A DNA stretch of 64,000 bases from Macrostomum lignano (GCA_002269645.1 NIVC01002003.1:62001-126000), one strand, 5' to 3'; positions 49 through 64,000 are shown, counted from the stretch's first letter. Translations and numbers: made by a program. The notes: generated by a model from the letters alone, not told the origin.

Positions 49-13417
<13,369 letters not shown>

Positions 13418-31600: not shown

Positions 31601-32465
31601 AAGAATCGCCCCTCAGACATCAATAAGAATCGCCCCTCAGCCATCAATAAGAATCGCCCCTCAGCCATCAATAAGAATCGCCCCTCAGCCATCAATAAGA
31701 ATCGCCCCTCAGCCATCAATAAGAATCGCCCTTCAGCCATCCATAAGAATCGCCCCTCAGCCATCAATAAGAATCGCCCCTCAGCCATCAATAAGAATCG
31801 CCCCTCAGCCATCAATAAGAATCGCCCTCAGCCATCAATAAGAATCGCCCCTCAGCCATCAATAAGAATCGCCCCTCAGCCATCAATAAGAATCGCCCCT
31901 CAGCCATCAATAAGAATCGCCCCTCAGCCATCAATAAGAATCGCCCCTCAGCCATCAATAAGAATCGCCCCTCAGCCATCAATAAGAATCGCCCCTCAGC
32001 CATCAATAAGAATCGCCCTTCAGCCATCCATAAGAATCGCCCCCCAAACCGCCGATCCCGCAGGACCTAGCCGCTCTAACCTCGGGCAAAGACCCCCGCA
32101 CCAAGCAGAGAGTAGTTCAGCTGCTGCTGTACACAGGCCAAGCCGCTACCATACTGCCAACCATATCGCAGTGGTGGCCGCCAAAGTTTCCAGTGAACGG
32201 TCACAGCATTTTATCCAATTGGAGATTGTCAATCGCTGGCAAAGGCCCGATTCTCGGCCAGATCATTGATCTGTTGCGATTAGAATGGCGAGACAGTCGC
32301 TACACTGCCGATGAGGCCACGCTATTAAGAGAAGAAGTCCGAGTCCGCGTGCTCACACAGCTGGGTCAGTCAACTGTTAAACGGTCCAACGATTCTTTTG
32401 GCGACGCTACCTGTGGCGCAATTGATAGAAGCGATAAAACAAAGAAGAAAATCAAAAATAAATGA
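28687..32465 (+). CDS. TRNT1: CCA-adding tRNA nucleotidyltransferase (class II), 3 exons, about 500 aa
   Basis: Exons 28687-29064, 29735-30457 and 32064-32465 are all phase 0. Motifs: AGGAVRDLL..DLDFAT, HGT, NFE|VTTLR, RRDLTINAM, RIREDYLRILRYFRF, ERIWVELKQIL, PKFPVNG. Confidence 0.95.
29165..29680. repeat. 22-bp minisatellite (GAGATAGGTGAGATTCTGGGTT) in TRNT1 intron 1
   Basis: About 23 copies, degenerate at the 5' end. Confidence 0.9.
30474..32045. repeat. 24-bp minisatellite (AATAAGAATCGCCCCTCAGCCATC) filling nearly all of TRNT1 intron 2
   Basis: About 65 copies; source of the spurious MAEGRFLL ORFs on the minus strand. Confidence 0.97.
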
Positions 32466-36238: not shown

Positions 36239-36351
36239 TTTTTAAATGTCTTTTTAGCAAGGTAATCACGCTATTAGAAATGTTTCTAACCAGATCTTTA
36301 TATTCCCATTTCAGCAAGGCTCCCATTAATCAACAGTTGCTATCCAAAAGC

Positions 36352-36765
36352 ATGTCTTATTACTTTGTCATCGTGAACCCAAAAGACGAGGCCATCTACG
36401 AGTTGGAGCACTCAGCTTCTAGGACAGGTGACAGAAGAGATGACCACCGACACCTCAATCAGCTGGTTGCCAACTCCGCCTTGGACATTGTCGACGAATC
36501 GCTTTGGTCGTCCAGTTCGATGTACTTGAAAACTGTTGACAAATTCAACGACTTGTTTGTCAGCGCTTTTGTCACGCCGAGCCGGTTGCGGCTGCTGATT
36601 CTGCACGACACCAAAAATGAGGACGGAATCCGGCACTTCTTCTCAGAAATGTTTGAGACCTACGTTAAGCTGGCATTGAATCCGTTTTATCAGCCTCAGT
36701 CACCGATTAAATCTGCGGCATTTGATAGGAAAGCCCAGCAGTTTGCTAGGAAATTTCTCAACTAA
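36352..36765 (+). CDS. TRAPPC2: TRAPP complex subunit 2 (sedlin), 137 aa, no intron in CDS
   Basis: MSYYFVIV...DDHRHLNQLVANSALDIVDE..W....MYLKTVDKFNDLFVSAFVT...NPFYQPQSPIKSAAFDRK matches sedlin over its full length. The longer ORF from 36142 merely reads in from an upstream minisatellite. Confidence 0.95.
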   Translation: MSYYFVIVNPKDEAIYELEHSASRTGDRRDDHRHLNQLVANSALDIVDESLWSSSSMYLKTVDKFNDLFVSAFVTPSRLRLLILHDTKNEDGIRHFFSEMFETYVKLALNPFYQPQSPIKSAAFDRKAQQFARKFLN

Positions 36766-41858: not shown

Positions 41859-44800
41859 ATGGATCGACATCTTCTGTTTACAACAGTTTTCTTCTGCATC
41901 TATTACTGCTGCTTTTTTGCAACTCGTCCAGCTTGGTCTTTGTCGCTCGCGTCAGCTGCAGCAACGCCAGCTGTCTCATCAGCATCTGGCAGTTCGTCCC
42001 CTTCGCTAAGCAGCACTGGTGGCAGCTATTCTCGAAGCGTCAACGCTCTGTCGCCTTTGCCATTTCGGGAAGGTCACGCGTTGAAGAAACTTATCGGTTT
42101 AGACATTCGTCTGCCTTCGCCGCTCCAACCAGTCAGAGCCTATCTAGGTCTGCAGTATGCCGCTGTTGGAAAACTCGACGCTAAGACTGAGCATCGTTTC
42201 GGTCGCTCCGTTGCCACGATGAAGTACAACTATTATCCAACGGAGGGCACGTTCTATTGCAACAGTTTTAAACCGGTTTGTCCTCAGAATAAGCCCAGCT
42301 TAGCCGAAGTTAGGGCCACATCGTCTGCCGCTTACGCCAATCATGTGCAACGGATTCTCCCGTATCTGCGGCATCAAGATGAAGAGTGTCTGTACTTGAA
42401 TGTCTACAGGCCGGCTGAATCGGATACTGCAACAGGTGGTGCTTCGGGTGCTGGTAATGCAAGTGAGTTTGTCTATCAGGGCACGTGTACTGTAATTGAT
42501 TGCAGATGCGATAATTAAATTTGGCAATAACCATTTAGATGCCAAAACTCACGGGGGGGGGGGGTTCTGAAAGGCTGTAGCTCATAAGGTAATCGCTGAA
42601 ATGTCAAGACTAATGAGGGTTGCTCAGATGCCAAGGGTCAATTAGGAGTTTTATGACAGTGAGTGTACGCTCGTACAGGGTCAAAAGCAACATGTAGTTT
42701 TTTTGAGAAAGTTATTTCATTTTTGTTGCTTTCCCAACGGGGGCGATGATTGCTAGTCCATATATACTAAATACTAAGGTATAATGACTGATTTCGAAGC
42801 TGTTTATAACAGTCCGGGGTATAGTCCAGCAAAATAGTACGGTAAACAATTTTATGACCGTTTCGCTTCGTCAATTTAAAAAATTGACTTTATAAATATG
42901 ATTTTAATATTAACACTATCGATCACAGTGGCGTTTAAAAAGTGTCTGGCTGCTTGCGATAACTCTAAAGCAGGAGACATTCAATCGGATTATTCTCTTA
43001 AATATTTCCGCTGGGATAAACTTTTCTAAAGCTGTTTTTCTTTCAGTGACAGTAATATCGTATAATGTTCTCTCTTGGGGATGTCTTAAATTCTGGGGAA
43101 GTCATGCTAAATTTGAAAGCCCAATATAAAAAATATACTGTTTGAGACAACACGCAAATTTATCTGACTGAGAAAAGCTGACATAGAATCGGACATCCAA
43201 ATTTACAAGTTGCAATGTGAGCGTATATTTTAAAGAAGTTGATTAAGATCAATACTGCGAGTAACAAGTCTGACAAGTCATAACTTTCGGCCATAGACTA
43301 CCAAAGCGTATTTTATTTAAGCTTTTTATCTATATCGCAGGAAATAACAGAGACATCCAGAAAATTAAGTTCATTTGACTTTTTCACATCAATTAAGGGT
43401 TACATTATACATACTATATTTTGTTGTATAGAGTCAAAGGCACTTTGTGTCTTACTCATTGATATTGGCTGCATTTAACGATATTATATTGACTTTCAAC
43501 GTTGAATATCTGAATGCCCGTTCTCTAACTTTCCACGACAATCCGCTATACTCATATACGAGTATATCAATTTCACTTTCAGTATAATCAAAATGTAATT
43601 TGCACTTTACATTTTTGCTTTTCTTTGTACCTTCAATTTTAGACACGTACGTAGCAGATAAGGTTTTATAAATTATTTATTATGAACAGTCAGGTTTTTT
43701 TAATGAAAATGGAGATTATATTTTTTATCCCTTTGTTTGTAGTCTAGGACACGTTTGCTTCTACAGAGCATATCGGTATGGGTGATACAGTTCTTCCAGC
43801 TGATTTTTACTGTTGATATATACTTTTGATTGAGTTGGTTGACTGTACAGAGTACACAGATCCGGATAGGAAATAGTAATAGTCAGTCTAATAGGAGAGA
43901 AGGGGTTACGCAGTGAAGCTACTGTTGGCAACTGAGCATGGAGTGGAGAAGAGACTCGCTTGGTTGTGTGTTTCTGTCTTTCTATCTCTGAGGCTACTGC
44001 AAATCGTTTCTGGTCTCTATCCATTCTTATTAATCAATTTTTTGGCCCACGCCATCCGCCGCTCCCGGCCTGTTCTATGGCGTGCTTTTTGAGTCGCAAT
44101 GTCGCCCCCCGCCGCTGCTATTAGACTGCTCCTCTCTTCCACCGGCTGTGCGTATCTGTTCCACCCGGGTTGCCATCCTCCCCTCTGGAAAAGGTCTAAA
44201 AAGTTTACTGTAAAAATATGTCATATATGTTTGCTTTATTGCTATACAAGCTTAGATACCTAAGGTTTTTACACCTAGCGCTTGTACTCTACAGTGATGA
44301 TGCTTGAGTAGGTGAATCAACCGTGTTTTATTCATTCTTAAGGCTGTGTAGCTGTCTTCATAAAAGCTGAGGAATTGATTTTTTTGCAGGAAATCCTAGT
44401 TCTGGGACAATTAGCTTCCGTTATAAAAATATTTGGAAGAGACTTTCACAACTTTCTTTTGTAACGTTTTCTGCAACAACTTTCATCTGAAAAGTTTTCC
44501 TCTTAAGGTGTTTTGTGCGTGTGTTAAAGGAAATGGCGTTACCAGCGCCTCTGTTGTGCTTCCCTATGTACAGTAGCATTTCCCTTCTCCCAAATCCATT
44601 GTACCTATATGCCTGTATTTAAGCTGTTTGCCTTTATTGTAAAGTTTCTCTTTAGCAATTAGTTAAGTGGCCACTATTCATTTATGAACCCATACTGTAC
44701 TTTTTATATTCTAATCACTATTTCGCGGCAAATATTTCAGGCGGAAATGTACCCTTATAGCTCTTGTACTAGTTTTGTTATAAAATAGCATTTTGCTTTG

Positions 44801-47800
44801 ATTTGTCCAATCCTGTTCACTACAAAGGATAATTAAGTGGCCGACGGAATGAATAGCAAACATAAGCGGTATATAAAATAGATAAAGCGTTTGATACATC
44901 AAACTCTATTAGCTATTCTGCTGGGTAATGCTGCTAATTCTGGATAAACTGCATACATGTGAGCGGAGACTAGATCCAGGGGTTGGCAAAGTCCGATCTA
45001 TGAGCCACATGCGACCCACAAAGCCTTTCTACCTGGCCCTCTGGTCCTTTTAAACTTCACAATAGCAATCATGGCCGCTCAAAGTCTTTATCCATTTTCC
45101 TTTCACCTCCTCTCCTCTCCTCCTCTACCTTTCTCCTCTCCTTTTTCCTCGTAATCTCTTCTTACCTCTCGTCTCCCTTTATTCCCTCGCATCTCCTTTC
45201 TTCTATCTCCCTTTTCTCTTCTCTATTCTCTCTTTTTTCTGTCTCCCTTGCAAAAAAGTAAAAGTACGGCAGAATCTGTTAAACTTTACCGGGTACCTAT
45301 TTGAGTCTTTGCAGACCGAAAATCACTTTGTGCTATTTGAGCGCAAAGATTCTACACTCTGAAGTAAAGCTTTGGTGCGCTTGCCAAACTCGCCATGTTC
45401 ATCTGCGTGGCGCACGCGCATAAACAAATTGCTTGGATTGGAATAGGGACCTCGGGGAGATCTTGGAGTGCAACTCACTGTGTGTGTGTGGGTGTGGGTC
45501 TGTGTGCTCGGGACAGTAAAGACAAGAGCAAAAGGAGTGAAGGGGGAAAGAGCTGGGAATTCAGCCTGTGTGCAGTATATATGAGTATATATGAGTAATT
45601 GAAAGAAGAGAAATGCAAATTGAATCGGCCGGCGTGCTCGACTTTCCCTGTTTAGGATCGCGATTAGGTCGGATTTGCGTTTCTGACACACCAGCGAATT
45701 CTTTGTATTGCATTATTATGCCGAACTCGCTGCTTCTGTCTGCTGCTACTAAAAGAGATTTTAGCGCTGGGACCCCATTTATAATGCGGATGAAAATGGA
45801 TCAGCCAAAGCAGGTTGGCAGGTGAATAGGCGAAAAGTAGAGTGGGTGAAAAGTTCATCAGACTATAAGCCATAGAAAATCTCCGCTAGCAATGAAATTG
45901 AAGGCAGCGCTTTTATGTCGCTTAATTCAGTTTAGCGGAAAACAAATCCCTACCTACCGACCGACTGTAGCATTGCGACGTCTGTTGTCTTCTTGGCTTT
46001 CCAGACCGCCCACGCGAGATTTAATATTTTTCTGCTGTTTTGTAATGAACCATTCCCAATGGATTTGAAAGCCAGTAGCGAGATTTCCAACAGAAAAGAA
46101 ATTCAAAATTTACTTTCATGAATGAGGCTCTGTGGAAAGACAAGGGAGGGGGAGAAGGGCTTGCCAATTAATCATAAATCTTGTTTAATATGCTGGCCCT
46201 ATGAATGATAGCTATTTATCTACAGGCCGCAGTGTGCGACGTCTTGGGAATCCGCTGGGAGACGCTCGCTTATTTTTCTGGGGCACAAATATTTGGAACT
46301 TTTATATATTTCGGAAGAGTTCATTCATCCGTACAACTCCCTGACTGACGACTCTGGCGTTAATATAGTTTTGCGCTCGGGTTGGCGGCCGAAGGCGACA
46401 GCGACAGATAGATAGGCTATTGGGAAAGTGGGAGACACTCTGGAGGACATTGGGTCGGAAAAGTGTAAGGAGCGCTAGATAGAGAAAGAGAAAGTAAGAA
46501 TAGAGTAAACCGCCAAAGCAGGAAATGAAGTTCATTTTCCTGGGGTTCCGTCATTGGGCCTCTTATAGCCTTATATACCGGTAGCTATACTAGTTTACTA
46601 CTGTAGTCTACCTACCCTAGTATTTTCCCCTCTTCTTTTTTGTTCTTTGAAATCCTTTTACTCGATTTGTCTATTTTGTCCACCGGAGTCTCGGCAATAT
46701 CTGCATCTAAATTTCTATTTTAAATCGGTTCCTTCTTAAACTATATAATATAGTTTTGGTCGTCTGGCTCCAATACTTGATTGCTTTCCTCTTACTGGTG
46801 CAGTGTTAGCCTTGTACTCGTAAGCGTATTGTAGTAAGCGCTTATTTATTTATTATGCATGTGTATGGCTGGGCACTTTTCCTCCTCCATGTACCAGGCT
46901 TCCAGATTGATGTTAAAAAAGAGAGAAGAACTTCAAGGGAATAAAAAGTTAGGCGGACGGGCTAAGAGTGGTTATACGTCGTAGGTGGGCAGAGAAATCA
47001 CTGAACTTTTCCTTTGTTACTAAGCATGCGGCGACAAATTGGTCCATCAAGAGAAGCGCGCTTGGTAGAGAGTCTTCTCTCTTTTATGGGCCTAAGTTTA
47101 ATAGTCTACCGTAGGCTTCAGTGAGGTATTGAGGCAGTCTGAGAATGGTTGAGAGCGAGAGAGGAAGTGGGAGAGTGGGAACCGCTTTTAGGCATTCGCA
47201 GAAACTTTCCATTTACTTTGTCCGTACTAATATGGATTTTTTCTAAGTCATGCCGCTTATTTTTTTATTCTATTATCAGTCAGAAATCAACTCAAGTTAG
47301 GAACTTATTTCTCCCTGTATTTGTCCTCTATCGAATGATGATGACGTAATCCTCCATATCCTCGATCCGACAATACACACTCTAATTTGCATTCCCAAAG
47401 TCAAATATGCTTTCATTAGTCATCGTATTTGTCAAAAAGAATTTTTCTCCACTTTCGCGGGGCTGTGTCGTGCAGAGTTTCGAGTTGTTTTTCGTGGAGA
47501 GCCTCCTATGAATATGAGAGAGAAATCGAATCGCATGCTGCTTCGTCTATTCCAGAAGAATGATTCATATCGATACTTGAATACAGTCTGACATTTGTTA
47601 ACCTGTGTTTTTTCCTTAGTCTTCTTTAGTACAAGAAATGATTGAATTAAAGCTAGTTTTTTTACTGACTCTCATTCTGCTGTGCCAGTAATTGAAATCC
47701 TAAATCACTGCGCACCAGTGCAGCTATGGGTTTTGACAGTTCGAAAATTAGTTTTTCTTCTGCTTCCAACGGAACACCTTGCCAAGCCGAACATATTGCT

Positions 47801-50800
47801 TGCTTGCGCGGTCTTTTCCGTCACTTTTTACTCCTTTATACCGTCCTTTCACTCGACTTGAGAGTGGACACAGGGACAGTCTTGCTTCCTTCCTGGCAGG
47901 GAGCGGCGTCCCGCAGAGATTTATCCTCCAGGCTAGAAGGGCCGAGAACACGGCTAAGAGGTTGCATCATCGCTTCTGTTGGCTGTTAAAGCGAGCAAAA
48001 AAATTTTTGGTTGTCAATCTTTCTTTTTGCTTTCCAGCCTTAATTCTTCCCGTCTTTTTTCTTGCGCAAATTGAAAACACGCAATTCCCTGAAGATGAAT
48101 TCTGGTAACGGTTTTATTTTGGTTTAAGAGTTTTAAGCTTAGTAACAATGTGCAATATAGGTGTGAATCATTCCTGTCCATTTTGTGTGCGTGTTCTCCA
48201 CGATGACTCAGGCAAGAAACGTATTGCATATTGTGTTTAGTCTTTCACTCTCTTTATCCTTACTTCCTCTGCGATCTAATTGTTTGGTTATTGGGGTGTT
48301 TTTTAGTTTTTTTTCTATTTTCTTTGCCCATATTCCCTCGATGGCTGTCTATGGCCCAAACTATCCTTATTTTACATGTATATACTCGTATATAGGATTA
48401 TAACTTTGTGTGTACGTTTTCCAACTTAGCATGACAAAAGCAATATTAACCAGTGTTAAAGCACTCGGGTTTGGTTTTGTGGGGGGGGGGGTGCACATTA
48501 ATCTGGGACTGCTATGTAAGCATGTGCCTGCGTACGCATCCGTGAGCTTGTTCGTGCTCCGAGGTCAGCAGAATTGACATGAGCAAGTGGACTGACCCCT
48601 TTATTTGCGGCAGCGCCCACAGCTCCACATACTCTGCAAAATGACTTATCTAGCTCGTATAGAAGAAAGAACTGACTTCTTTGCCATATTTCTTTGGGAA
48701 TTATTTTACTAATGAACATATTCGTGTACGAATGTAAATTTCAAGCCTGGCTTCCTGCGTATGTGCAGGTTGTTTAACCTCAGGAGTGTATTATGCCATC
48801 TCATTTGCATTCTGCTTTTTCCTCGCAATCTCTCCTATCCATCTACTGTAGACTCACCTCCCGTTTTGAGTTATGGGCACGTTCGTTTGTCTTCAGCTGC
48901 TGTCTTTTTGGTCATGTAGCTTAAGGTTTGTTATATGACTGATGATATTGATTGAAGTATGATTTGGAATAAAATTTGGCTGCAGGTTATAATATCTTGG
49001 TACTGTTGAATATTTTCTCATTATTTCATTACCTATGCTTATTGCAGCTTGTATGTATACATGTTGGAATCAATAAATTTTCAATCAGCACAGCAGATGA
49101 ACCGAATAACACGCGTGCATATAAATAAATAAATATATGCTCCTGACTGTCTCCTCTACATGCCTCTATCGCTCGCATGATTGTTAATAGAAAAAAAATC
49201 TTATCACATCGACAGTAAATAATGGACAAAAAATGTGCTTCTTTCTTTCTTCCAAAGGGGAAAAAACATTTTTTATTCCGTTGACATTTCCATTGCATCC
49301 GCTGGTTAATCTCCGGGTGCTATTGTGATCTAGTTCCTCCATTACCAGATTAAGTAGGGTTTGATCTTTCATGTGTCCTATTGAAATAGGCCCCTTTAGT
49401 TAGTTACCTTGATAATCTTTCCGCAACATTGTCAGTTCAATAGGAGCATAATATTAGAAGTCGAGGGCATTTTATCGCGAGCAAATTATGCTGTATACCC
49501 ATGGCTTGACACTTTCTCTCCTTTTTGTTTGGTTTTTTTTCATTTCACCCCATGGGGCCCTGTCCTGTCCAGTCAAATCTGCTGCTACTCAAAGCTCTGA
49601 CCATTTGCTAATGAACATTGTCACACAGTCCGCCGCCAACCCCTTCTGTCCTGTTCTCTGTCGCCTTCTCTTTGTCTCGTCTCGCCAAAAATCTCGCACC
49701 ACGCGCATGCATACTTCACTTTGCTTTGCTTTACTGCCTGTTCCGCCCTGACTAAAGAAGTCTGCGTCTCCATCTGGGTTGCTGGGTACCCCTGCTCCCC
49801 CCTTCATTTTTGTTGTCGACCTCCGACTTACCCCCCCCCCCTCATCCAGACTCCTCAGGCCGCCCGCAATTCCTCAATCTCAATCGATGCTGTCAATCAA
49901 GTCTAGGCGGAGAGTGCGCGGTCGTCAGTCTCCTGTGGGCCCACTACAGTATAGCTGCAGCTCTGGACCTCTAATTCCTTTGGCTGCCATCATGCGTTCC
50001 ACTCACACACTCTCAAATTTTCTCCTTTTATCGTGTTATGTTTCTAAAATTCTACCGGAGCTACTCCCGGGTCTCCAGGCTAAGTCAGCATCTCCGCCCA
50101 CTTTGCCCTGCCGCATTGGAGTGAGGGAGAGTTTCACTCAGATGTTGAGGATGTTGAGTTTTTTCTTCAACCAAAGATTCTTCTTTCAACGCTTGTGGAT
50201 AGAGAAAACACTTGTGCACCCCCTACTGAGCTCAATGTCAAGCAACAAAAAAGCCGAGTAAAAAATTGAAAAGAAGAAAAATCTCTTCAAAGAATGAATG
50301 GCGCCAAGTGCAAGTCAAGTTAACTTTCAAAGTGCAAAAAGCCTGGCTTCTGTATTACAAGAAAAAACACTTCTTTCGCCGTTAAGAGCTGTTTACTTGT
50401 ACTATCTTGCAGAGGCAAGCCCCCTTTTCCCTCAAGTTGCTCAACTTATAACTACAGGGTGTGAACGGTTGACATTGGAGACTTGTACAAGTCGTCAAGA
50501 AAGTCAAAACACAAGTCACAACCAGCACGTCTACTAACTCCATGTCTCTTCGTGTCCTCCATCTATTTGGCTAGTGTAGTCAACTTCTAGGAGCTTGTCC
50601 GACTTTATTTTTATTGGCTTTTCCTCATCCACTTCTTACTAGTGCAATACATTATATATTTAACGCTGGTTCGAGGTTGTTTTTAGCTTAGCTTGAATTA
50701 CAGTACCTACCGAACTACTAAAGTTAGCCAGCAATTCCAAAGTGTGATTGCTTGAATAAAAGGATCGAAAAGTTCTGTGTTGGTTTTTAAATAATCGAAG

Positions 50801-53800
50801 ATGACCCGGCATGACCTGACCCTCTCGACTGTTATGTTCCGAATCAGCTATGTGATTATTGTCATTATTCTATAAAGAATTTCTGGTTCTTATTTACCGT
50901 ATCCGTATTTCATCACTATTATTTTTATAAAGCCACCCATTTTATTCGCGCTTGACTAACTTCTCCGCTTTCTTTCCTCTCTATTCAACACCTGACAGAT
51001 GCCAAAGTGTGAATGGTTCTACAGGTAGAAATCGTCCCACACTTTTGCCCCTCCCACCAGTGCCTTTCCGCACTACTTCACCATGCTGCAGCTCTTCCCT
51101 AGCAGTCGCGCCAGTGTAAAATAAACACCCCGACAACCCAATATACTCGCTGGTGGCTGCAGCTGCTAGGTGAATTCATGTCGACCTTAACAGCCAACAG
51201 CCTCTGTTTAAACACCACTAGCCTCTTGTAGAGTATTGGCACTTTAGTGCGCCTGTTGCAGCAGTTGCTTCTCTATTTCTCTTACGCTTCTCCAGTTTTT
51301 TTCGTTAGAGTTTGTTCTATCTGAAAATTTTCTATAAAAGTTTTCTACAGTCTTCACATAGTGGATTCATATGAGTGATTTTTTATTAAAATATAAAATT
51401 TCTATTTTGGGTAACTGTTTCTTTCGCTTATAACTATGCATCTTATCCCACTCTGCACGTCTTTGAACATCAGTTTACACACAGTCTAATTGGTCTTTCT
51501 TCTTTTTTCTAACCCCTGGTTGCACCCACCCACTTCCTGCCCCATGCGCACAAGTTTGTTTGTCTTATCTGTCCATTTCTAACTTTCTAACCCCTTGGCT
51601 GCACCCACCCCACTCTTTGCCCCATGCGCACACGTCTTTTGGTCTTATCTGTCCCTTTCTAACTTTCTAACCCCTTGGCTGCACCCACCCCACTCCCTGC
51701 CCCATGCGGACTAGCTTGTTTGGTCTTATCTGTCCCTTTCTAACTTTCTAACCCCTTGGCTGCACCCACCCCACTCCCTGCCCCATGCGCACACGTTTTT
51801 TGGTCTTATCTGTCCCTTTCTAACTTTCTAACCCCTTGGCTGCACCCACCCCGACTCCCTGCCCCCGTTAAGTAAACCCGCCTAACTCTTATAGTTATAA
51901 GTTATCAGTGGCCTAGGATTTCTTTTACAGTCCGTTTTGTTCCCTTGCCCTAGTTCATCCCACCAGTGCCCAATATGCCACAGCTTCCAACAAGGAATCA
52001 TGGACAGCCAGCATATTTGCATTTTGACGCAATTTCTTTTAGTGTCATAAATCATATTGATTTGATTCTGAATATATAGTCGATACTATTTTATCAAAGC
52101 TAGATATTTGTCAGGGAAGAAAAATGTATATATAAATCAGGTGAAATTCGATCCTTTACACTTGACCAGTTGTCGAATAAATGCCCATATATTCCTACTG
52201 TTTTTTATATATTGGCAACAAATGCTGCTAACACCTGAGATAGCCACTTGCTCTCGCCTCATTAGCAAAAAGCACTAGGCATATAATCCGGCCATGACTA
52301 ATCGCGAATATAATACAATATCCATAATCGCCAATAATAATATATCTCGCCCTAACACCTTGACTAGATCTTTACCTTTATTTGATTTCTCGCACTGCAT
52401 GGGCTAGATCGGGTAACGCTTGATTTATTCCCTCCCTAGCTCCCGGCCTCTATGAGAACTCGGATTTCTCTTCATATCCTCAAACTGGTCAGGCGTGCAA
52501 AAATTATTATTGCTATAAGTATATTGCTAAATCAGATGTAAGAAGCGAATTTCTTTGCATTCATTGCACGCTTCATTTATCTTGTGTCAACTAAAGTAAG
52601 CTAAGATTGGCGATTAATTGTAGTTGTAGCCATGACAACCAGAAATTGTTCTGGAATGTTGATGATGAGACTGCATCTATATGTATAATATTCATCAGTG
52701 TGTGTGTGTATATGTGATTTAGCAATTTTCTTTTCCTAATTCCTCCCATCGAATCGCCTAATTAGGCTTGTTAGTGAGGCTGTTATAATAGAGAGAAAGA
52801 GAGAGAGGGGCAAGGATTACGAATTGAGTGTCTCTACCGGCTGACTGTTGATGCAGGCGCTGGAAAAAATGAATATAAAAAGTAAGGGATGGAGGTGTCT
52901 TTATAGGCAGGAATAGGTTCTTGTTTACTTGAACTTTCCTGGAAAGAAAAACTCTGCGGTAAACGGTTTTTTGAGTTTCAAGCGCCACGACCACCTCACC
53001 CCCTGTGTATATTACATATTACATGTATTACATGTGTGTGTATGAGTGCGTGTCTGTGTACAGTTTGTGTGCTCGTGTGGTTGGACGATGTCGCTAAAAG
53101 TGCGCACAAATCCTGTGAATCTATAATTTAACTAAATGGTTGTTTGCTTGTGTAGCCAGGAATGGATTGCTAGTCTAGCCAATCAAATTTAAAATAGTAT
53201 AATAGTTATAGATTGGATTGATTGGTCATTTAGTTAGTCTTTCGGCCATAGAGTATATTATATCCTATATTCTAAGCTTTAAAGCTTAATTATAACTCGT
53301 ATCAATTAATTGCTGGTTTCTGCTTATTAAATTAAAGTCTGATTATGAGTTATCAATCGACTAGTTTGTTAATCCGCGCACTACTACTGCCCAACGCTTG
53401 GCAACGCTCCTGCTGCTTAGCAACCGTTGCTGCGGTGAAGCGTCATCAACCGTTGATCAAATTTCCCAGTAGGCGAAACGGTGGTGTTGCCTCGTCAACG
53501 GGTAGTCAGCGATCCGCGCGACCGAGCCTGTCAGCCAGCCAATCAGGAAATTGGAAAGAAGATTTCATGACTCTGGAGGCCAGGTACCAGCGACAGCGAA
53601 TCGACGACCGAGAAATTGAAGCCATCAACTCTGGCGGCGCCAGCTTGTACTGACTGACCTGAACTGTGTCACCTGTGTGTGTGTGCGTTCGATGTAGCAA
53701 TTAGTTTCAATACTGTGGCGGATTTGATAGGGGGAGTAAGACAAATTTGTTTTTTGGTGCCATTTTGACGCATTCTGGCGCCACTATCACCTATTTTGCT

Positions 53801-56800
53801 GCGCCACTAACAGATCCAGTTTGGGCGCCATTCACAGCTCCAGTTTTGGCGCCATTTACAGATCCAGTTTTTGCGCCATTTACAATTCTGGATTTGGCGC
53901 CATTTACAGATCCAGTTTTTGCGCCATTTACAATTCTGGATTTGGCGCCATTTACAGATCCAGTTTTGGCGCCATTTACAGCTCCAGTTTTGGCGCCATT
54001 TACAGATCCAGTTTTGGCGCCATTTACAGCTCCAGTTTTGGCGCCATTTACAGATCCAGTTTTGGCGCCATTTACAGCTCCAGTTTTGGCGCCATTTACA
54101 GCTCCAGTTTTGGCGCCATTTACAGCTCCAGTTTTGGCGCCATTTACAGATCCAGTTTTGGCGCCATAAGCAGGTCCAGTTTTGGCGCCAATAAATAACA
54201 CACCTAATTTGTTGAGGCAATTAAAATGCCATCCGTTTTTACGATCCGCCACTGTCATCTTCAGTTATTTTAATTATTTGAATTTACAATTCACAAGACT
54301 ATTAGCTGTTTTTGTACTAAAATTAGCAGTTGTAAAATATATAACTTAACAGTGCTCAGAAATCTTCTTTCAATACAAAAGTAATATAGATTATAAGAAT
54401 TTTAAGTCGGCACATTGTAGAAGAGTACATAAGTGCCTAGTTTCAGTTCATTAATTGAATCCAGTTTCAACAAGTTTGAATTCTGTGCTTTTGTATTTCT
54501 TTCCTGAATTTATGAATTTAGTCTAAGACAGAATTATAGCTCTGCAGTCGATGACTCACTCTGCCGAAATGCCGGCAAGACTTAAAGAATTATCGAGTTC
54601 GGTATATAATCCAGTTTAGTCAGACTTAAGGAAGTTTTTCTTTCGCTAGAAAATCTATCAATACTCCACTCTGGAGGATGGGTTATTGAATTCCATTTTT
54701 TTATCTTTCAACTCTTCGGCTTTCGTCTCTGCCTTTTTTCTGTCTGATAAGTATTTTTTTCGTCCTATTCTCTGTCTGCCTCAATATACAGTTCTTTTTT
54801 TCTCTAGTGGTAATTGCATTGGGAATTTGACTTGATAATTGTATTTGCAGTTATCTCTCAATAGTATTTTATTACGTATTATCACTTGATGGTGAGTTTC
54901 TCCTATCGTCATGCTTTATCATGAGATTGTACATTCTCATGCAGAATCATTATTCAAAGGGTGAGATTCTCATACAGGATCATATTTCCCAGGGTGAGAT
55001 TCTCATGCAGGATCATCTTTCCCAGGATGAGATTCTCATATAGGACCATCCTTCCCAGGGTGAGGTTCTCATGTAGGAGCATCTGTTCCAGGGTTTAGAT
55101 TCTCATATCAGATTACGAGTATCATTCTCAGGATGAGATTCTCATGTACAAGCATCTTTTCCAGGTTGATCTTTTCATATCAGATTATCATTCTCAGGGT
55201 GAGATTCTCATGTAGGATTATCATTTTCAGGGTGAGATTCTCATGTAAGAGCATCTTTCCCAGAGATTCTCATATCCGATTGTCATTCTCAGGGAGAGAT
55301 TATCATGTAGAAAAATCTTTCCCAGGGTGAGATTCTCATGTAGAATAATCTTTCCCATGGTGAGATTGTCATATAGAAGCACCTTTCTTCTGGTGTAGGA
55401 GCATCTTTTTCCTACTGAGTTTCTCATGTAAAGTAATCTTTCCCAGGGTGAGATCTCCTGTGGGATCATCTCTCTCAAAGTAAAATTCTCATATCCGATT
55501 GCCATTCTCAGGGTGAGATTTTCATGTAGGGTTATCTTTCCCATGTTGAGATTTAAACGCAGGATCATAATTTTTGGAATGAGATTCTCGTGGGATTATT
55601 ATAATTACTGGGTATGATTTTTTATTATGATATGTGGGATTATCATCCCCATGATTTAGGCTTTCCTGTAGCATCCAGTATTTGTTTAAGTATGCAGATT
55701 GTGACTGTCTGTAATTTAATATAAACAGTGCATCTTTTCAGCGAGTCGTAAGTTTCTAAAAAGAAATCTAAGAGTTTGAAACGGACTAAGCCATGAAGGC
55801 GTTGCGCGGTCTGCCAAACAGGGCGCCACTGCCTCCAAAATCGCCTTCTGCAACTTCACAACACGGCGTTAATCCACAGTGCTTCGATCCGTTGCCATGG
55901 GAAACGTATTTTGATAAGCGCGATTTTGCTAGAGTTGAACGAACTGATTGCTCCGGCTCATTTTGCTACTACGTTAAAGAGACTCAACCAGAGGATGCCG
56001 CTAATGCTGCTCACAACGATATGCCAGCCTCTCCGGGAGGCATCTCAGCTCCTCCTGTCCAGTCGCCTCCGTTGGTGTTTCTGCTTCACGGCGGCGGCTT
56101 CTCCGGCCTGTCCTGGGCCGCCATGAGCGCCAGTCTTGTCGGCAAGGTTGTCTGTAGATGCGTATCGTTCGACATTAGAGGTCACGGCGACAGTGTGTTA
56201 GATGAAAAAAGTCCAGAAGATGATGGAAGACACAATGATATGGACTTTTCTCTTGACGCGCTCACTAACGATGCCGCATCACTGTTGAACTGCCTGTTGG
56301 AGTCGTCTGACTTTTCTGCTAATCCCCCGTCTGGTGTGGTACTGATCGGTCACAGCATGGGCGGTGCCATTGCTACCCACCTGGCTTACAGCGGCCTGTG
56401 CCCTCTGCCAGTCTGCGCATTAGTTGTTATCGACGTTGTGGAAGGTTCCGCTATGGAAGCCCTGAGCAGTATGAGAGGCTATCTGGCTAGTAGGCCGAGT
56501 AGGTTCCCCAGTCTCCAGGCTGCTATTCAGTGGTGCTATCGGTCCGGCACAGTGCATAACTTGGACTCTGCTAGGGTCAGCTTCCCAGGCCATCTGAAAC
56601 TTGTCAATCCGTCCGAACGGCAACAGCAGAAGCAGAAAGACCAGGAGGAGCCGAAACAACCTCGTCACTCAGTGGCAAGTTCAGCTATCACAGAGGAACC
56701 AGAAGAAGAAGATGAGGAACAAGCAGACTCTGCAGATTCCATGCAATCAAAACAGCTATCTTTGCCTGGCCTTTCACTCCGGGGTCCAGCCTTGCTGAAT

Positions 56801-59800
56801 TCTCGCTCAAATAAGCCTCCATTGCCGATGGCTGCTGCTACAGCTGCCGACAACAGGCCTAGTTATCGATCTGCTCAGCAGGTTGATCCAACTCAGCCCT
56901 ACTACACCTGGCGAATCGATTTGAGCAGTACAGAGTCGCATTGGTCAGGCTGGTTCCACGGAATGTCGCGTAAATTTCTTGAAGTACCTGCGGCAAAGAT
57001 GCTACTGTTGGCGGGTGTTGACCGGTTGGATCGAGAGCTGACAGTCGGTCAGATGCAGGGCAAATTTCAGATGCAGTTGCTGCACCGGTCTGGCCACGCG
57101 GTTCACGAGGATCATCCGGAACACGTTGCGGAGGTGCTGGCCTCGTTTCTCGTCCGGCACAAGCTGGCCAGAGCTTTAGCTGACTTCCATCCTGCACCGC
57201 CAGGCTGTTGACCTTATTGTTGACTGCCTCTCTTCATCTGAGAATGCAAATTTCTTTGCTAATACGAGACACTTCCGACTCAATGGGGTATTTATTTAAA
57301 GTCAGATTTTTACAGTCAAAACAATGCATTGGCAAGATTGAAATTTGGATGATATTAAAAACGAATATTTTAATACGTAACATCTTCTGGACTGTCAAAG
57401 ATTAACTGAATTTGATGTTGAAAAGCTTGTAAACGAAAATTGACCCGTTGGATTGTCACACCTAAGTCGCAAGGGCCAGGCCTGACGATTAGAACGGAAT
57501 ATATAAATTGGCAGAATTACCTCACTGCTTGCTGTGGGACGAAACTTATCAGAGGTAGAGGTCTGTGTGCACCCTGGCGCACTTTAAGCGACATGCATTG
57601 TCACACAACCGTTTCGCCGACTTCCCTGAGCAGGCACACAAGCGCGCGGATACGTACGCAGTCATACGCACAGGCACACACTCACACAGGAGTGCACAGC
57701 GGCCCTAACTTTACAACCGCTAGAACAATGGGCTACGGCCCCCTAAAATACTGTAGCTCATTACAAAACACCTTTTTAACGAAATAAGATCTACAGAAAA
57801 ATCTTTTTGTAGAGAAACGCACTTTTTCTGCTTTTTTTCAATCTTGCTAATGTATTTCAAATCGAAAAAAATATTATGATTTCGTGTTAAGCTCTCTTTG
57901 TAGACGTCGGTTTTTGCACCTTGGAATGTTTTCAAAGCAATTATAGAAAGACACAAAGGAAGGCCTTTTTCTTTGTTGAGCTCAGCGACTCAACGAGATG
58001 AAGAATTAGAAAGAAAAAGTTGAATTAGAGTTCAGGGGATGCATGCTTCAAGACCTTAAGTCGAACCGTATTTCCGGATATTTTTATACCTTCATTATCA
58101 AGTTTGAAATTTGCTCGAACAGAAAAATTTCTGTTTGTCACGAAAGCTGTCGCGATGTCATTTTGTCTGTCGCTTTGTATTATCAAACACAATAAATATA
58201 AATATAAATTTCGAATGTCTTTGTTGTACTCTTGTGTATAAAAAATTATAAAAAGTTTTAAAATGCACACAATTTTTGCAAAAAAAACTCAATCATATTT
58301 TGGGATTTTCATTTTCCAATGTGTTTTTCATTTAAACGAACCTGAGCGTCTCGTGGTCAAAACATGCTTTAGAAATTTTTAGATTTTGATTACCGGTATA
58401 TCAATTTCGACTAGATGCTCAGCTATTATAACTAACTGCATTCGGCATTATGAAGGTATCGAATTCCTCCTAATTGTTCTGTCCAAGCCAATTATCGATT
58501 TAATTACAGGCTCAGGCAGTGTGGCTTGCCCTAACCCCGCCTCAGCACACCCCCTGGCAACCAAATCTCTGATGACGATTGACTAGAAAAATTATCATCC
58601 TTTTTTACCTTTCTCTGTACCTAATTTTCTTATTGCCTTTTGAAGTTCTTTCCGCGGAATACATGAGGCTTTCGATTGGCATTTCGATTGGCACTAACAA
58701 TCTTATAGCTGCTCACAATTGGATACCGACATTTCTAAGCCTCTGAAGATAGGGAATCTATTATTTTACAGTCCTAAAATATCAATAGTTATGATAGTTA
58801 TAATTCCCGTCATTTTGAGGTCAGCCAGATTTGAAGTTCAAATACTAAGTAGCTGTCCGACGAAATATGGGTCTAAATCTCTCGCAGTAAAAATGCTGTC
58901 AATGCAAGTTTCCATACAGACCCTGCGACAATTCAACTGACAAGATGGCAGAGGCAGATGTACGAGCCTAAGTCAATTTTGCCTAAAGAGAAATATCATC
59001 TAATAGAATCTAATGCAGGCGTCAGGCCAGACCGCCTCGAATATTGAATTCCGTTTCTAATTTGAACAATTCGACTTGTGATGTCTGCTTTGAAAACGAA
59101 AAATTGGCAATTTTGCTTCCTTTGTCCGCCCGATTGCTTAGCCCACGCAAAAGGAATAAAGCGAAAAGAGGTCTGAGGGTAGCAGATCCCACCGAAGGAT
59201 CTGAGAGGATAGCAGATCCCACCGAAGGATCTGAGAGGGTAGCAGATCCCACCGAAGGATCTAAGTGGGTAGCAGATCCCAACGAAGGATCTGAGAGGGT
59301 AGCAGATCTCACCAAAGGATCTGAGAGGGTAGCAGATCTCACCAAAGGATCTGAGAGGGTAGCAGATCCTACCGAAAAATCTGAGGGTAGCAGATCTCAC
59401 CGAAGGATCTGAGAGGGAAGCAGATCCCACTGAAGGATCTGAGAGGGAAGCATCTGAAGGATCTGAGAGGGTAGCAGATCCCACCAAAGGATCTGAGAGG
59501 GTAGCAGATCCCACCGAAGGATCTGAGAGGGTAGCAGATCCCACCGAAGGATCTGAGAGGGTAGCAGATCCCACTGAAGGATCTGAGAGGGTAGCAGATC
59601 CCACCAAAGGATCTGAGATGTACAAACGTACTCTGAAAGACCATTGCAAGCCGTGCCTTGTTAAATTTGGTAGTTAAAATAAAGTTACACTCAGTACATG
59701 CTCCATAAACCGCCACAGAGTCCGGACCAACTGTATCCGAGCGCAAGCTGCCAGTCGTGATATTTGTTCACGGCGAGAGCTACGAATGGGGCACCGGAAA

Positions 59801-60721
59801 TGCCTACGATTTGAGCGTCTTTGCCAGCTACAATCAGTTGGTTGCGATTTCGCTAAATTATCGAATTGGAACACTGGGTAAAATTATGTTAGACATAAAG
59901 CACTTATTCTACTCATGCCATTCACACCTGTTAGAGCTCCTCATGGTCAACACCCACACGTGTTAGCCGCATATGCTAGACGTCCGTACCTGTTAGACAT
60001 CCACACCTGTTATACTAGACATTTACACCTGTTAGACATCCACACCTGTTAGACATTTACACCTGTTAGACATCCACACCTGTTAGACATCTACACCTGT
60101 TAGACATCCACACCTGTTAGATATCCACCCTGTTGATATCCACACCTGTTAGATATCCACACCTGTTAGACATCCACACCTGTTGGATATCCACACCTGT
60201 TAGACATCCACACCTGTTAGATATCTACACTTGTTAGACATCCACACCTGTTAGATATTCACACCTGTTAGATATTCACACCTGTTAGATATCCACACCT
60301 GTTAGACATCCACACTTGTTAGATATTCACACCTGTTAGATATTCACACCTGTTAGATATCCACACCTGTTAGATATCTACACCTGTTAGACATCCACAC
60401 CTGTTAGATGCTGTTAGATATTCACACCTGTTAGATATTCACACCTGTTAGATATCCACACCTGTTAGACCTGTTAGACATTCTACAACACTTAAGTCAC
60501 CTCAAGTCCCCCCAATCTACACTGTTTTTTCACAGGCTTCTTCGCTACAGAAGACGGTTCAGCCAAGGGCAACTACGCGCTGATGGATCTGAGAGACGCG
60601 GTGCAGTGGGTGCACGCCAACGCTGCACAGTTCGGCGGTGACCCCGCCAGCATCACCCTGATGGGTCACGGCTACGGTGCAGCTCTGGTGTCGCTGCTTA
60701 TGGCATCCAAGTTTGCCCAGG
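41859..60721 (+). CDS. Neuroligin-like, catalytically inactive cholinesterase-fold protein; 5' exons only, continues beyond the window
   Basis: Exon 41859-42462 has a hydrophobic signal peptide, YLGLQYA, VCPQ and QDEECLYLNVYRP. It joins in phase 1 to exon 59719-59877 (KLPVVIFVHGESYEWGTGN..LNYRIGTLG) and then exon 60536-60721 (KGNYALMD..FGGDPASITLMGHGYGAALVSLL). The nucleophile elbow is GHGYG with no Ser, typical of neuroligins. Confidence 0.85.
51427..51901. mobile_element. Putative MITE or Helentron-associated-type element with 11-bp inverted repeats and an ~80-bp tandem core
   Basis: CTTATAACTAT (51427-51437) and ATAGTTATAAG (51891-51901) are a perfect inverted pair. They enclose 4.5 copies of an ~80-bp unit starting at 51509, 51587, 51667, 51748 and 51828. 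Confidence 0.5.
53345..53653 (+). CDS. MRPS36: MRPS36/KGD4-like alpha-ketoglutarate dehydrogenase adaptor subunit, 102 aa, nested in neuroligin intron 1
   Basis: N-terminal VKRHQPLIKFPSRR and C-terminal LEARYQRQRIDDREIEAINSGGA match the two conserved blocks of MRPS36/KGD4 (human approx. VKPHTPLIRFPDRR ... YRRKLVSQEEMEFIQRGG, recalled from memory). Size matches, and there is a mitochondrial-presequence-like N-terminus. Confidence 0.8.
   Translation: MSYQSTSLLIRALLLPNAWQRSCCLATVAAVKRHQPLIKFPSRRNGGVASSTGSQRSARPSLSASQSGNWKEDFMTLEARYQRQRIDDREIEAINSGGASLY
53750..54190. repeat. 24-bp minisatellite (TTTTGGCGCCATTTACAGCTCCAG) 3' of MRPS36
   Basis: About 17 copies. Confidence 0.95.
54892..55741 (+). 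other. Putative 5'-UTR intron of PPME1
   Basis: Strong donor G|GTGAGT at 54892 and acceptor CATCTTTTCAG| at 55741 bracket the repeat. A candidate 41-nt non-coding exon lies at 54851-54891 (preceded by TTTGCAG). Confidence 0.4.
54895..55650. repeat. Degenerate ~33-bp repeat (GGTGAGATTCTCATGTAGGATCATCTTTCCCAG) upstream of PPME1
   Basis: About 22 diverged copies. Confidence 0.85.
55793..57211 (+). CDS. PPME1: Protein phosphatase methylesterase 1 (PME-1), 472 aa, no intron in CDS, nested in neuroligin intron 1
   Basis: Alpha/beta hydrolase with LLHGGGFSGLSWA, DIRGHG, GHSMGG (nucleophile), IDVVEG, YTWRIDL, LLLAGVDRLDRELTVGQMQGKFQMQ and GHAVHED. Confidence 0.95.
   Translation: MKALRGLPNRAPLPPKSPSATSQHGVNPQCFDPLPWETYFDKRDFARVERTDCSGSFCYYVKETQPEDAANAAHNDMPASPGGISAPPVQSPPLVFLLHGGGFSGLSWAAMSASLVGKVVCRCVSFDIRGHGDSVLDEKSPEDDGRHNDMDFSLDALTNDAASLLNCLLESSDFSANPPSGVVLIGHSMGGAIATHLAYSGLCPLPVCALVVIDVVEGSAMEALSSMRGYLASRPSRFPSLQAAIQWCYRSGTVHNLDSARVSFPGHLKLVNPSERQQQKQKDQEEPKQPRHSVASSAITEEPEEEDEEQADSADSMQSKQLSLPGLSLRGPALLNSRSNKPPLPMAAATAADNRPSYRSAQQVDPTQPYYTWRIDLSSTESHWSGWFHGMSRKFLEVPAAKMLLLAGVDRLDRELTVGQMQGKFQMQLLHRSGHAVHEDHPEHVAEVLASFLVRHKLARALADFHPAPPGC
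57590..57745 (+). repeat. Dispersed repeat (SINE/MITE-like fragment), copy A
   Basis: CCTGAGCAGGCACACAAGCGCGCGGATACGTACGCAGTCATACGCACAGGCACACACTCACACAGGAGTG is identical at ~60850-60920. Both copies are followed by GGGCTACGGCCCCCT. Confidence 0.8.
59172..59618. repeat. 30-bp hairpin minisatellite (GAGGGTAGCAGATCCCACCGAAGGATCTGA)
   Basis: About 15 copies; each has CAGATCC-N7-GGATCTG. Confidence 0.95.
59985..60480. repeat. 17-bp minisatellite (CACACCTGTTAGACATC) in neuroligin intron 2
   Basis: About 29 copies. Confidence 0.95.
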
Positions 60722-60799
60722 GTGAGCCAATATTTGTGCTAAAAATTCCCTACCAAAGTGCCTGCACCCCTAAGTTCGATTCGTCGCTGAGTGTACAAC

Positions 60800-61045
60800 C
60801 CTGTGTCACACAACCGGCGAGAGGCATTGCTGCCGATTCCGCAGACTCCCCTGAGCAGGCACACAAGCGCGCGGATACGTACGCAGTCATACGCACAGGC
60901 ACACACTCACACAGGAGTGTACACTTCACTGCGCCTTGGGGGTTGGCCCTCACAGCCGTTAATTGCACGAGCAGAGCCAAGCCGAGATTCCAATTCAGCC
61001 CTAAATTAATGCGACTGCACTTGGAATCGAGCCTGGGCTACGGCC
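60800..61045 (+). repeat. Dispersed repeat, copy B (neuroligin intron 3)
   Basis: See copy A. Confidence 0.8.
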
Positions 61046-61626
61046 CCCTTCAAAGCTACATGGTTTTATTTGACTAAAAGTGCAGGACATGCGGACACAG
61101 CAGTCCGAGGCCGGTGATTTATTTCCCAATGATGTCTTAAAATATTTATTGCAGCATCAGGGAGTGTGGCTTGGAGCGCAGGTTCTAGAGAACACCGCCA
61201 CAATGATATCCTAATGTACCGGTTTTGATCCAGAGTCTGTCCAAGGACCATTGTTAGACAAATGTAGATCGTGGCTGTACTTCATTCTTTTGATGTTGGC
61301 GCGCGGTTCCGGATATCTGGGATATACGCGCAGTCTGACACGTTGATTTACGGTTGGTCATGAGGAATTTATTGTATGGGGAAAGCATTGAACACTTCAG
61401 TTAGTGGACTTGAGACCGCTGTGAGCTTCATCTGCCTTGTTAACTCTGCAATCTGGGATCAAGTCACTGGTGCGTGCGGTTTGAGGTCAACCATTGAGAA
61501 TTCTCAGTGGCTTCATGCTGATTTAATGCTTGGCAAATATTGGCTTTGGAAAACTTGGATTTTGATTCTGAATTATATTTATTGTCCTAAACGTTCCGGT
61601 CTCACTCACTGTCTGTCTCCCAACTC

Positions 61627-61825
<199 letters not shown>

Positions 61826-61864
61826 TTTGATCTATTCATCTAGTATTCTTCTCTCTAGTAATTC

Positions 61865-62260
61865 TCTCTAGTAAGCCTTGACATCGCAGAAATTCTCTCC
61901 AGTAAGCCTTGACAACTCAGCAATTCCCCCAGTAAGCCTTGAAATCCCAGCAATTCCCCCAGTAAGCCTTGACATCTCAGCAATTCCCCCAGTAAGCCTT
62001 GACATCTCAGCAATTCCCCCAGTAAGCCTTGGCATCTCAGCAATTCCCCCAGTAAGCCTTGACATCTCAGCAATTCCCCCAGTAAGCCTTGACATCTCAG
62101 CAATTCCCCCAGTAAGCCTTGAAATCTCAGAAATTCCCCCAGTAAGCCTTGACATCTCAGCAATTCCCCCAGTAAGCCTTGACATCTCAGCCATTCCCCA
62201 GTAAGCCTTGAAATCTCAGCAATTCCCCCCAGTAAGCTTTGACATCGCAGCAATTATGCT
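61865..62260. repeat. 30-bp minisatellite (AGTAAGCCTTGACATCTCAGCAATTCCCCC)
   Basis: About 13 copies. Confidence 0.95.
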
Positions 62261-63002
62261 TGAGTCTTGACATCAAAGCAATTTCCCACACCAGCCTTGA
62301 CATCTTAGCAATTCCCAGTGATTATTTTATGCTCGACAGGTAGCTTCTCTTATGGTTGACATGGTGATTCTTTTTCGCTTTTTCTTGCGTTGAGTCTATA
62401 AGTTCTGTCCCGCATTTAGCAGTTCCTCATTTACTTTCAGTTCTCCTCAGTCGCCATCACTCTTATCCTCTAGCAGCAAATGCAGTCCAGCTCTTTTGTC
62501 CCCTCTGCCTCTCTCTCCCATGTTTCTGTGCAACAGCCCTAACCCCGTTAAAGCAAGGAAATCGTTTTGCATAATTTATCCCCCCACCACTGTAGGAGAA
62601 GTGGCCTTGTGGCGTGAGTAGACCTCTCAAAGAATTAGATAGTCCATCCATTTCATTCACAGGTAGCAGTATGAGTGATATGTTTTAGCAATAAAAACGC
62701 ACATATACAAGCTTTGGATAGGCATGTCAGAAGGACAGGAGACTCAAGGGGGAGACAAACGGGACTGGGGTAACTTTGGTGCGTTTTTTTTCCAAAATAC
62801 TTGAGTCATAGTTGATTCTTTTTCACATTTTTTGTGGTAATTCACATGCGTTAACTGAATTATTATTTTTTAATGCTAAACTGCGTTTTTTTGGAAGGCA
62901 GCTTTTGATGTTTTGCGCTGGTTATACTAAATCAATAGCTTCTGTCAGAAGGACATGCAACTGGTGTTCTCAGTGCCAAGCTTGGTTTGTCAGGGGCTGT
63001 GC

Positions 63003-64000
63003 TAATATTTGTGTCAGGATTGTGCTAATATTTGTGTCAGTAGTGGGCTAATATTTGTGTCAGGAGTGTGCTAATATTTATGTCAGGATTGTGCTAATAT
63101 TTGTGTCAGTAGTGGGCTAATATTTGTGTCAGTAGTGGGCTAATATTTGTGTCAGGATTGTGCTAATATTTGTGTCAGGATTGTGCTAATATTTGTGTCA
63201 GGATTGTGCTAATATTTGTGTCAGGATTGTGCTAATATTTGTGTCAGGATTGTGCTAATATTTGTGTCAGTAGTGGGCTAATATTTGTGTCAGGAGTGTG
63301 CTAATATTTGTGTCAGGAGTGTGCTAATATTTGTGTCAGGATTGTGCTAATATTTGTGTCAGGATTGTGCTAATATTTGTGTCAGGATTGTGCTAATATT
63401 TGTGTCAGGATTGTGCTAATATTTGTGTCAGGAGTGTGCTAATATTTGTGTCAGGATTGTGCTAATATTTGTGTCAGGATTGTGCTAATATTTGTGTCAG
63501 TAGTGGGCTAATATTTGTGTCAGTAGTGGGCTAATATTTGTGTCAGCAGTGGGCTAATATTTGTGTCAGGGGTGTGCTAAAATTTGTGTCAGGGGTGGGC
63601 TAATTTTTGTGTCAGCAGCTGGCTAATATTTGTGTCAGGAGTGTGCTAATATTTGTGTCAGTAGTGGGCTAATATTTGTGTCAGCAGTGGGCTAATATTT
63701 GTGTCAGGGGTGTGCTAATATTTGTGTCAGTAGTGGGCTAATATTTGTGTCAGCAGTGGGCTAATATTTGTGTCAGGGGTGTGCTAAAATTTGTGTCAGG
63801 GGTGGGCTAATTTTTGTGTCAGCAGCTGGCTAATATTTGTGTCAGGAGTGTGCTAATATTTGTGTCAAGGGTGTGCTAATATTTGTGTCAGGGGTGTGCT
63901 AATATTTGTGTCAGGAGTGTGCTAATATTTGTGTCAAGGGTGTGCTAATATTTGTGTCAGCAGCTGGCTAATATTTGTGTCAGGAGTGTGCTAATATTTG
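63003..64000. repeat. 23-bp minisatellite (GCTAATATTTGTGTCAGGATTGT) running off the window end
   Basis: More than 40 copies. Confidence 0.95.

Follow-up and report, generated by a model that had tools for sequence, protein, structure and literature searches.

A 64,000-nt window of contig NIVC01002003.1 (214 kb; assembly GCA_002269645.1) of Macrostomum lignano, with window position 1 at contig position 62001, contains the first exons of a neuroligin-like gene and, between exons 1 and 2 of that gene, two further genes, KGD4/MRPS36 (here MRPS36) and PPME1, which encodes PP2A methylesterase. All coordinates are window positions. Exon 1 of the neuroligin-like gene (41859-42462, + strand) carries the ATG and the first part of a cholinesterase-like domain and ends in phase 1. 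The inferred intron 1 (42463-59718, +) spans 17,256 nt from a GTGAGT donor to a CCACAG acceptor and is followed by exon 2 (59719-59877, +), which is entered and left in phase 1 and whose next bases are GTAAAA; intron 2 (59878-60535, +; 658 nt), most of which is taken up by a 17-nt tandem array (59988-60469); and exon 3 (60536-60721, +), with the acceptor TTTTTTCACAG and the donor GTGAGC. The two nested coding sequences (CDSs) lie wholly between the end of exon 1 at 42462 and the start of exon 2 at 59719, without overlapping any host exon, and every open reading frame (ORF) and splice signal of the host and nested genes is on the + strand.

Several features tie exon 1 to the exons beyond the nested genes. 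Exon 1 is an intact 201-codon ORF with its GTGAGT donor at 42463, and its N terminus is hydrophobic and signal peptide-like (judged by eye only). Its last residues, GAGNA (CLYLNVYRPAESDTATGGASGAGNA), are followed by a single base, A, and then by GTGAGT, so that the junction codon A|AG encodes lysine and the frame then reads SGPTVSERKLPVVIFVHG / SGPTVSERKLPVVIFVHGESYEWG from exon 2. Exon 2 lacks both a start codon and a signal peptide, and its phase 1 start fits exon 1. On the Pfam COesterase profile (PF00135), exon 1 covers positions 23-97, exon 2 covers positions 99-146, and exon 3 covers positions 162-208, with positions 147-161 covered by the first residues of exon 3; because these positions are consecutive on exons 1, 2, and 3, no domain sequence is missing across the exons. 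An earlier note on this DNA had claimed that exons 1 and 2 share a phase and leave no gap in the cholinesterase domain, and the A|AG codon and the succession of positions 23-97 and 99-146 bear that out. When homologues P0002 and P0003 (Bugula) were used as tblastn queries, the window matches were the three exons only, in collinear order, and no other N-terminal esterase piece was found in the window. From homology, phase, and splice signals, we infer the 42462-59719 splice, which would make the 17.3-kb interval the first intron of the host.

The family of the host was assessed with a composite protein of approximately 600 residues, made of window exons 1 to 3 and of exon 4, which falls beyond the window and was taken from UniProt model P0005 (sister locus L003:20566-21411). 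The composite matched the solved neuroligins NLGN1-4 at E values of approximately 1e-54 (177-188 bits), compared with 1e-32 for the next family, bile-salt lipase, and no more than 114 bits for lipases and cholinesterases. In exon 3, GHGYGA replaces the catalytic serine motif GESAG. A COesterase domain, greater similarity to neuroligins than to catalytic esterases, and loss of the catalytic serine were thus all found, and the host is, by these features, a neuroligin-like gene whose predicted product is a noncatalytic cholinesterase-fold protein. The alignment of the composite with neuroligins is uninterrupted over the exon 1/exon 2 junction, which falls in the loop of vertebrate splice site A. 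In vertebrates, splice site A comprises two cassette exons flanked by constitutive exons (PMC7486126), so an intron at this point is expected for the family, positional homology here being by loop alignment only. Like vertebrate NLGN1-4 (PDB 7CEG, 3BIW, 3BL8, and 2WQZ), which are its best matches over the whole esterase-like domain, the host has glycine in place of the catalytic serine and an intron at the splice-site-A loop. In contrast to NLGN1-4, its junction loop has a sequence that bears no relation to the A1 and A2 inserts, and the approximately 600 residues assembled, partly from a sister copy, leave the transmembrane (TM) segment and cytoplasmic tail outside the sequence covered.

The first nested gene, MRPS36 (53345-53653, +), is a single exon encoding 102 amino acids (aa). 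It matches Pfam Kgd4-YMR31 (PF10937) with 35.4 bits against a cutoff of 22, covering residues 21-99; a sequence search gave no solved-structure match for this ORF. The second nested gene, PPME1 (55793-57211, +), is also a single exon and encodes 472 aa; this ORF is present verbatim on NIVC01002003.1, and it has approximately 40% identity to named PPME1 proteins at 99% coverage (E value of approximately 1e-90). It aligns end to end with the human PME-1 structures (7SOY and 3C5V), with the GHSMGG, IDVVEG, and GHAVHED motifs all present, and residues ~276-368 form a low-complexity insertion at the site of the disordered loop of the human protein. UniProt models P0070 and P0072 splice this insertion out, whereas the 472-aa product on Mlig_3_7 contigs keeps it. 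Both genes are called by GenBank on the window contig, and the names on the sister contigs described below are BOX15_Mlig032594 (g1 and g2) for MRPS36 and BOX15_Mlig026503 for PPME1. With regard to a retroposition origin, no poly(A) tract was found in the 3' flanks read; target-site duplications were not searched for.

Two further copies of the region are present in the assembly, on NIVC01000208.1 and NIVC01002433.1 (loci L004 and L005, in addition to the window copy). Both sister contigs carry MRPS36, PPME1, exon 2, and exon 3 in the order and orientation of the window, and on both, the window is matched collinearly over about 10 kb of intron further upstream, at 95-99% identity; in all, 43071-61600 is collinear on three contigs. 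The coding parts of the three copies contain no indels and no stops, MRPS36 is intact in all three, and the exon 2 and exon 3 splice sites are identical throughout, with a single amino-acid change among the five variable sites of exons 2 and 3. By sequence comparison, the arrangement is older than the duplications behind the three copies. The sister-copy sequence compared starts at window-equivalent positions 43218 and 43071, 600-750 nt short of exon 1, and no annotated TRAPPC2 paralogue was found that could serve as an upstream anchor in the sister copies. The earlier note had described two complete + strand CDSs, MRPS36/KGD4 and PPME1, in a 17.3-kb neuroligin intron, and Pfam, homology, and the two additional contigs agree with that description.

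The locus is probably an ordinary same-strand nested-gene locus, with MRPS36 and PPME1 inside the first intron of a neuroligin-like gene. MRPS36 and PPME1 would each be expressed as a separate mRNA from intronic sequences, with their own 5'-end formation and probably in most cells, and the host would probably be a weakly expressed neuronal gene. During host transcription, the polymerase would have to traverse both nested genes, and splicing would have to join the strong exon 1 donor to the exon 2 acceptor. Mis-splicing would be limited in that the nested genes supply acceptors and not donors: neither nested CDS contains a GT[G/A]AG donor motif, so no internal exon is open to capture, and splicing of exon 1 to the candidate TTTCAG acceptor of PPME1 would be nonproductive because a stop follows after 12 codons. 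Nothing found suggests a new mechanism.

A number of observations weigh against this interpretation. GenBank has no neuroligin model at the window locus, although the neighboring genes are annotated, and a homologue search with spliced exons 1 to 3 returned no M. lignano protein bridging exon 1 and exon 2. The UniProt models, which derive from an older assembly, begin at exon 2 (P0001) or exon 3 (P0005). The linkage of exon 1 to the remaining exons comes from a single contig, NIVC01002003.1. The parts that define neuroligins, a single transmembrane helix and a cytoplasmic tail whose end binds PDZ domains, lie beyond the window, and exon 4 of L003 ends still inside the esterase domain. The 5' ends and poly(A) sites of MRPS36 and PPME1 are placed here by sequence motifs alone, and the acceptor motifs vary: that of PPME1 is TTTCAG in the window and L004 and TTTATG in L005, and that of MRPS36 is TTTCAG in L004 only and TTTCTG in the window and L005.

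Some of these observations would also be accounted for if the genes were neighbors and not nested. Exon 1, with no splice to 59719, would then be a relic or a truncated gene in its own right, and the functional neuroligin transcript would start at an unrecognized first exon past PPME1, or the whole neuroligin gene would be decaying and unexpressed. The GenBank annotation of the contig, which lacks the neuroligin model, is transcriptome based; the database models start at exon 2 or 3; and exon 1 is known from the window copy alone. Such an arrangement is nevertheless unlikely, in that exon 2 lacks a start codon and signal peptide and starts in the phase that exon 1 supplies, exon 1 provides exactly the missing Pfam positions 23-97, and the window holds no second N-terminal esterase piece. 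The intact 201-codon ORF and consensus GTGAGT end of exon 1 also count against it, as do the intact exons 2 and 3, whose splice sites are conserved in three copies that differ by one amino acid at five variable sites. UniProt models P0001 and P0005 were treated as prediction artifacts, as was P0064, a model joining PPME1 to neuroligin exon 3. As a candidate for evidence of exon capture, P0064 was rejected, being a frame-shifted chimera from the older, error-rich assembly. P0190 is also among the odd M. lignano UniProt models from that assembly, and P0064, P0070, P0072, and P0190 are likely prediction artifacts. The searchable literature contained no mention of Mlig026503 or Mlig032594; the gene identifiers, NLGN, and PPME1 were absent from the M. 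lignano paper supplements examined; and no literature on Macrostomum neuroligins was found.

SL trans-splicing may have a part in how the nested mRNAs obtain their ends. In M. lignano, one 35-nt spliced leader (SL) is found on the mRNAs of 30-39% of genes, at acceptors of the form [T/C]TNCAG, and about 15% of genes are in operons, with about 7% of transcriptional units being polycistronic precursors (PMC8629364 and PMC5730564); trans-spliced genes are enriched for conserved genes (PMC8629364). By analogy, SL trans-splicing is plausible for the M. lignano genes here. A candidate SL acceptor, TTTCAG (55736-55741, +), fits [T/C]TNCAG and precedes the PPME1 ATG by 51 nt; PPME1 would possibly be matured by trans-splicing at this site, where the ATG ending the SL would open an upstream ORF of just 6 codons. 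The L004 copy of MRPS36 shows a TTTCAG 22 nt before its start codon; the 5'-partial CDS annotated there opens 1 nt past this motif, where the end of an SL-trimmed transcript would be expected. No [T/C]TNCAG was found near the MRPS36 ATG in the window copy, and the manner of expression, or even its occurrence, may vary between the three copies. At the 3' ends, a candidate poly(A) signal, ATTAAA (57354-57359, +), lies 143 nt past the PPME1 stop and is present in all three copies; no canonical poly(A) hexamer was found within 537 nt 3' of MRPS36.

PPME1 would perhaps be the downstream member of a two-gene MRPS36-PPME1 unit. From the MRPS36 stop to the PPME1 acceptor is 2088 nt, from which subtraction of 1011 nt of Tandem Repeats Finder (TRF) arrays leaves about 1077 nt (~1.08 kb). 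The published operon criterion is a repeat-adjusted intergenic distance of <1 kb in the same orientation (PMC8629364), and the spacer is thus at or just above the 1-kb threshold, with the real distance shorter by the MRPS36 3' untranslated region. The arrays concerned, one of 24-nt units between MRPS36 and PPME1 (53801-54190) and one with a 33-nt period 5' of PPME1 (54933-55553), together account for about 1 kb of the 2.1-kb spacer. Like the SL operons of M. lignano (Ustyantsev and Berezikov 2021; PMC8629364), the pair consists of co-oriented conserved genes with [T/C]TNCAG 5' of the downstream gene and a spacer inflated by tandem repeats. Unlike those operons, the whole pair lies inside the intron of another gene, and trans-splicing here is proposed from a motif match only.

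In a second alternative to the main reading, the intron would hold no promoter, and the MRPS36 and PPME1 mRNAs would be cut from the neuroligin pre-mRNA, or from a longer precursor of upstream co-oriented genes, by SL trans-splicing and polyadenylation. The frequency of trans-splicing and operons in M. lignano, the enrichment of conserved genes among trans-spliced ones, the TTTCAG 5' of the PPME1 ATG, the + orientation of all recognizable window genes, and the near-threshold spacer are all in keeping with it. As the sole feed for a housekeeping pair, however, the promoter of a neuronal adhesion gene is implausible, and the host and the pair would be expected to differ in expression. An upstream cis donor, such as the GTGAGT of exon 1, is expected to favor cis-splicing over SL addition (Conrad et al. 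1993, as cited in PMC8629364), and the distance from exon 1 to MRPS36, 10.9 kb, is far above the mode of operon spacers of approximately 100 nt. The lack of a nearby [T/C]TNCAG at the window MRPS36 ATG and the variation of the acceptor motifs between copies point the same way, and such an intron-embedded operon is decidedly unlikely. A very low probability also attaches to the combined possibility that a cis-spliced host and an SL-resolved operon share one primary transcript, either the neuroligin pre-mRNA or a long unit starting upstream, with the product depending on whether the intronic acceptors are used in cis or in trans.

That exon 1 was misjoined to the remaining exons during assembly of a repeat-rich, partly polyploid genome, with the break within 42463-43070, is hardly credible: the assembly does hold several near-identical copies of the region (PMC8629364), tandem repeats abound in the genome, and 42463-43070 is supported by this contig alone, but the whole window is free of N runs, no dispersed repeat lies at the critical stretch, the collinear arrangement of 43071-61600 on two more contigs makes a misjoin downstream of ~43071 very unlikely, and the agreement of exons 1 and 2 in phase and domain position is not expected of a random misjoin.

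Same-strand nesting of MRPS36 and PPME1 within a host intron has many published counterparts. In Drosophila, nested genes constitute about 10% of genes, and 71.27% of them are on the strand opposite to the host, leaving about 29% on the same strand (Lee and Chang 2013; PMC3814207). The share of single-exon genes there is 72.5% among same-strand nested genes and 37.4% among opposite-strand ones, an excess attributed to selection against mis-splicing, and brain expression is overrepresented among the including genes (PMC3814207). For nested genes of mouse and human, the opposite orientation is only slightly favored (PMC11694760), and in a ctenophore with trans-spliced leaders, many parallel nested genes have been described (PMC8527503). 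The premise of the earlier note that nested genes are usually antisense to their hosts therefore holds for Drosophila, at 71%, but not to any great degree for mouse and human, and the rarity that it implied for same-strand nesting was overstated, given about 29% in Drosophila and the many ctenophore cases.

As in the Drosophila, mouse, human, and ctenophore examples, a single long 5' intron of a larger host gene contains complete coding genes at the M. lignano locus; the host is a member of a neuronal gene family, and the guests are single-exon, co-oriented genes functionally unrelated to it. The locus differs from these examples in that two guests stand in tandem, in that the organism practices SL trans-splicing, so that 5'-end formation of the guest mRNAs may differ, and in that the host junction, compared with those of catalogued cases, is deduced from the genomic sequence. 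As read here, the locus fits the same-strand nested class exactly, with a long 5' intron, a neuronal-family host, and two intronless co-oriented guests. Because single-exon guests are the known signature of the class (PMC3814207), no special mechanism beyond those discussed for it is required, and the earlier note went too far in calling for one.

The remainder of intron 1, which at 17,256 nt is >10 times the species mean for introns (1.1-1.4 kb, at 4.9 introns for the average gene; PMC5730564), contained few recognizable features. Ten of the longer stop-free intron ORFs outside the tandem arrays were scanned against Pfam without a match, and searches of the region for Rfam families, tRNAs, and the SL sequence were negative. 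The section from 45863 to 51703, and especially 47000-49000, is 98.4-99.8% identical over the three copies, compared with only 95-97% for the flanking intron; its identity equals or exceeds that of the coding exons, and it gave no ORF, Pfam, or Rfam signal. This high identity could reflect gene conversion between copies or a conserved noncoding element. The 24-nt array between MRPS36 and PPME1 (53768-54189 in this comparison) has an inverted, diverged relative of about 67% identity at 15726-16165, 38 kb upstream. An 87-nt dispersed repeat occurs, with 95% identity, at 57612-57698, 3' of PPME1, and at 60837-60923, in neuroligin intron 3; UniProt model P0001 translates the intron 3 copy as coding.

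Upstream of the neuroligin-like gene, the recognizable genes include a protein kinase gene (776 aa, ending at ~26566, +), a gene of the CCA-adding/poly(A)-polymerase family (28687-32465, +), and the TRAPPC2/sedlin gene (36352-36765, +). The genes called by GenBank in 26328-67211 are the kinase, CCA-adding-enzyme-like, TRAPPC2, MRPS36, and PPME1 genes, all +, and all recognizable genes of the window (~17500-57211) form a co-oriented cluster on the + strand in a species with operons. TRAPPC2 has a TTTCAG acceptor 38 nt 5' of its ATG (~36308-36352). In MetaClust entry P0314, an upstream segment of 113 residues is fused to TRAPPC2 at the TTTCAG point; this fusion could represent a polycistronic precursor or a prediction artifact. 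The window as a whole has the character of repeat-rich animal DNA with numerous minisatellites. Satellites are unusually dense at 4001-6000, 59988-60469, 61627-61826, and 62988-64000; one 2-kb satellite block has a GC skew of 0.80 and an AT skew of 0.73, an (ATCT)50 run is present, and a 23-nt array of 44 copies continues past the window end.

For M. lignano, these findings mean that a neuroligin-like gene present in three copies is missing from the GenBank annotation and is represented by fragmented or chimeric models in the older UniProt entries. For nested genes, the locus adds one more same-strand example, in agreement with the published rule that such guests are intronless. It could also be a convenient place to test how an organism with SL trans-splicing deals with acceptors and poly(A) sites that lie in an intron on the sense strand of the host gene.

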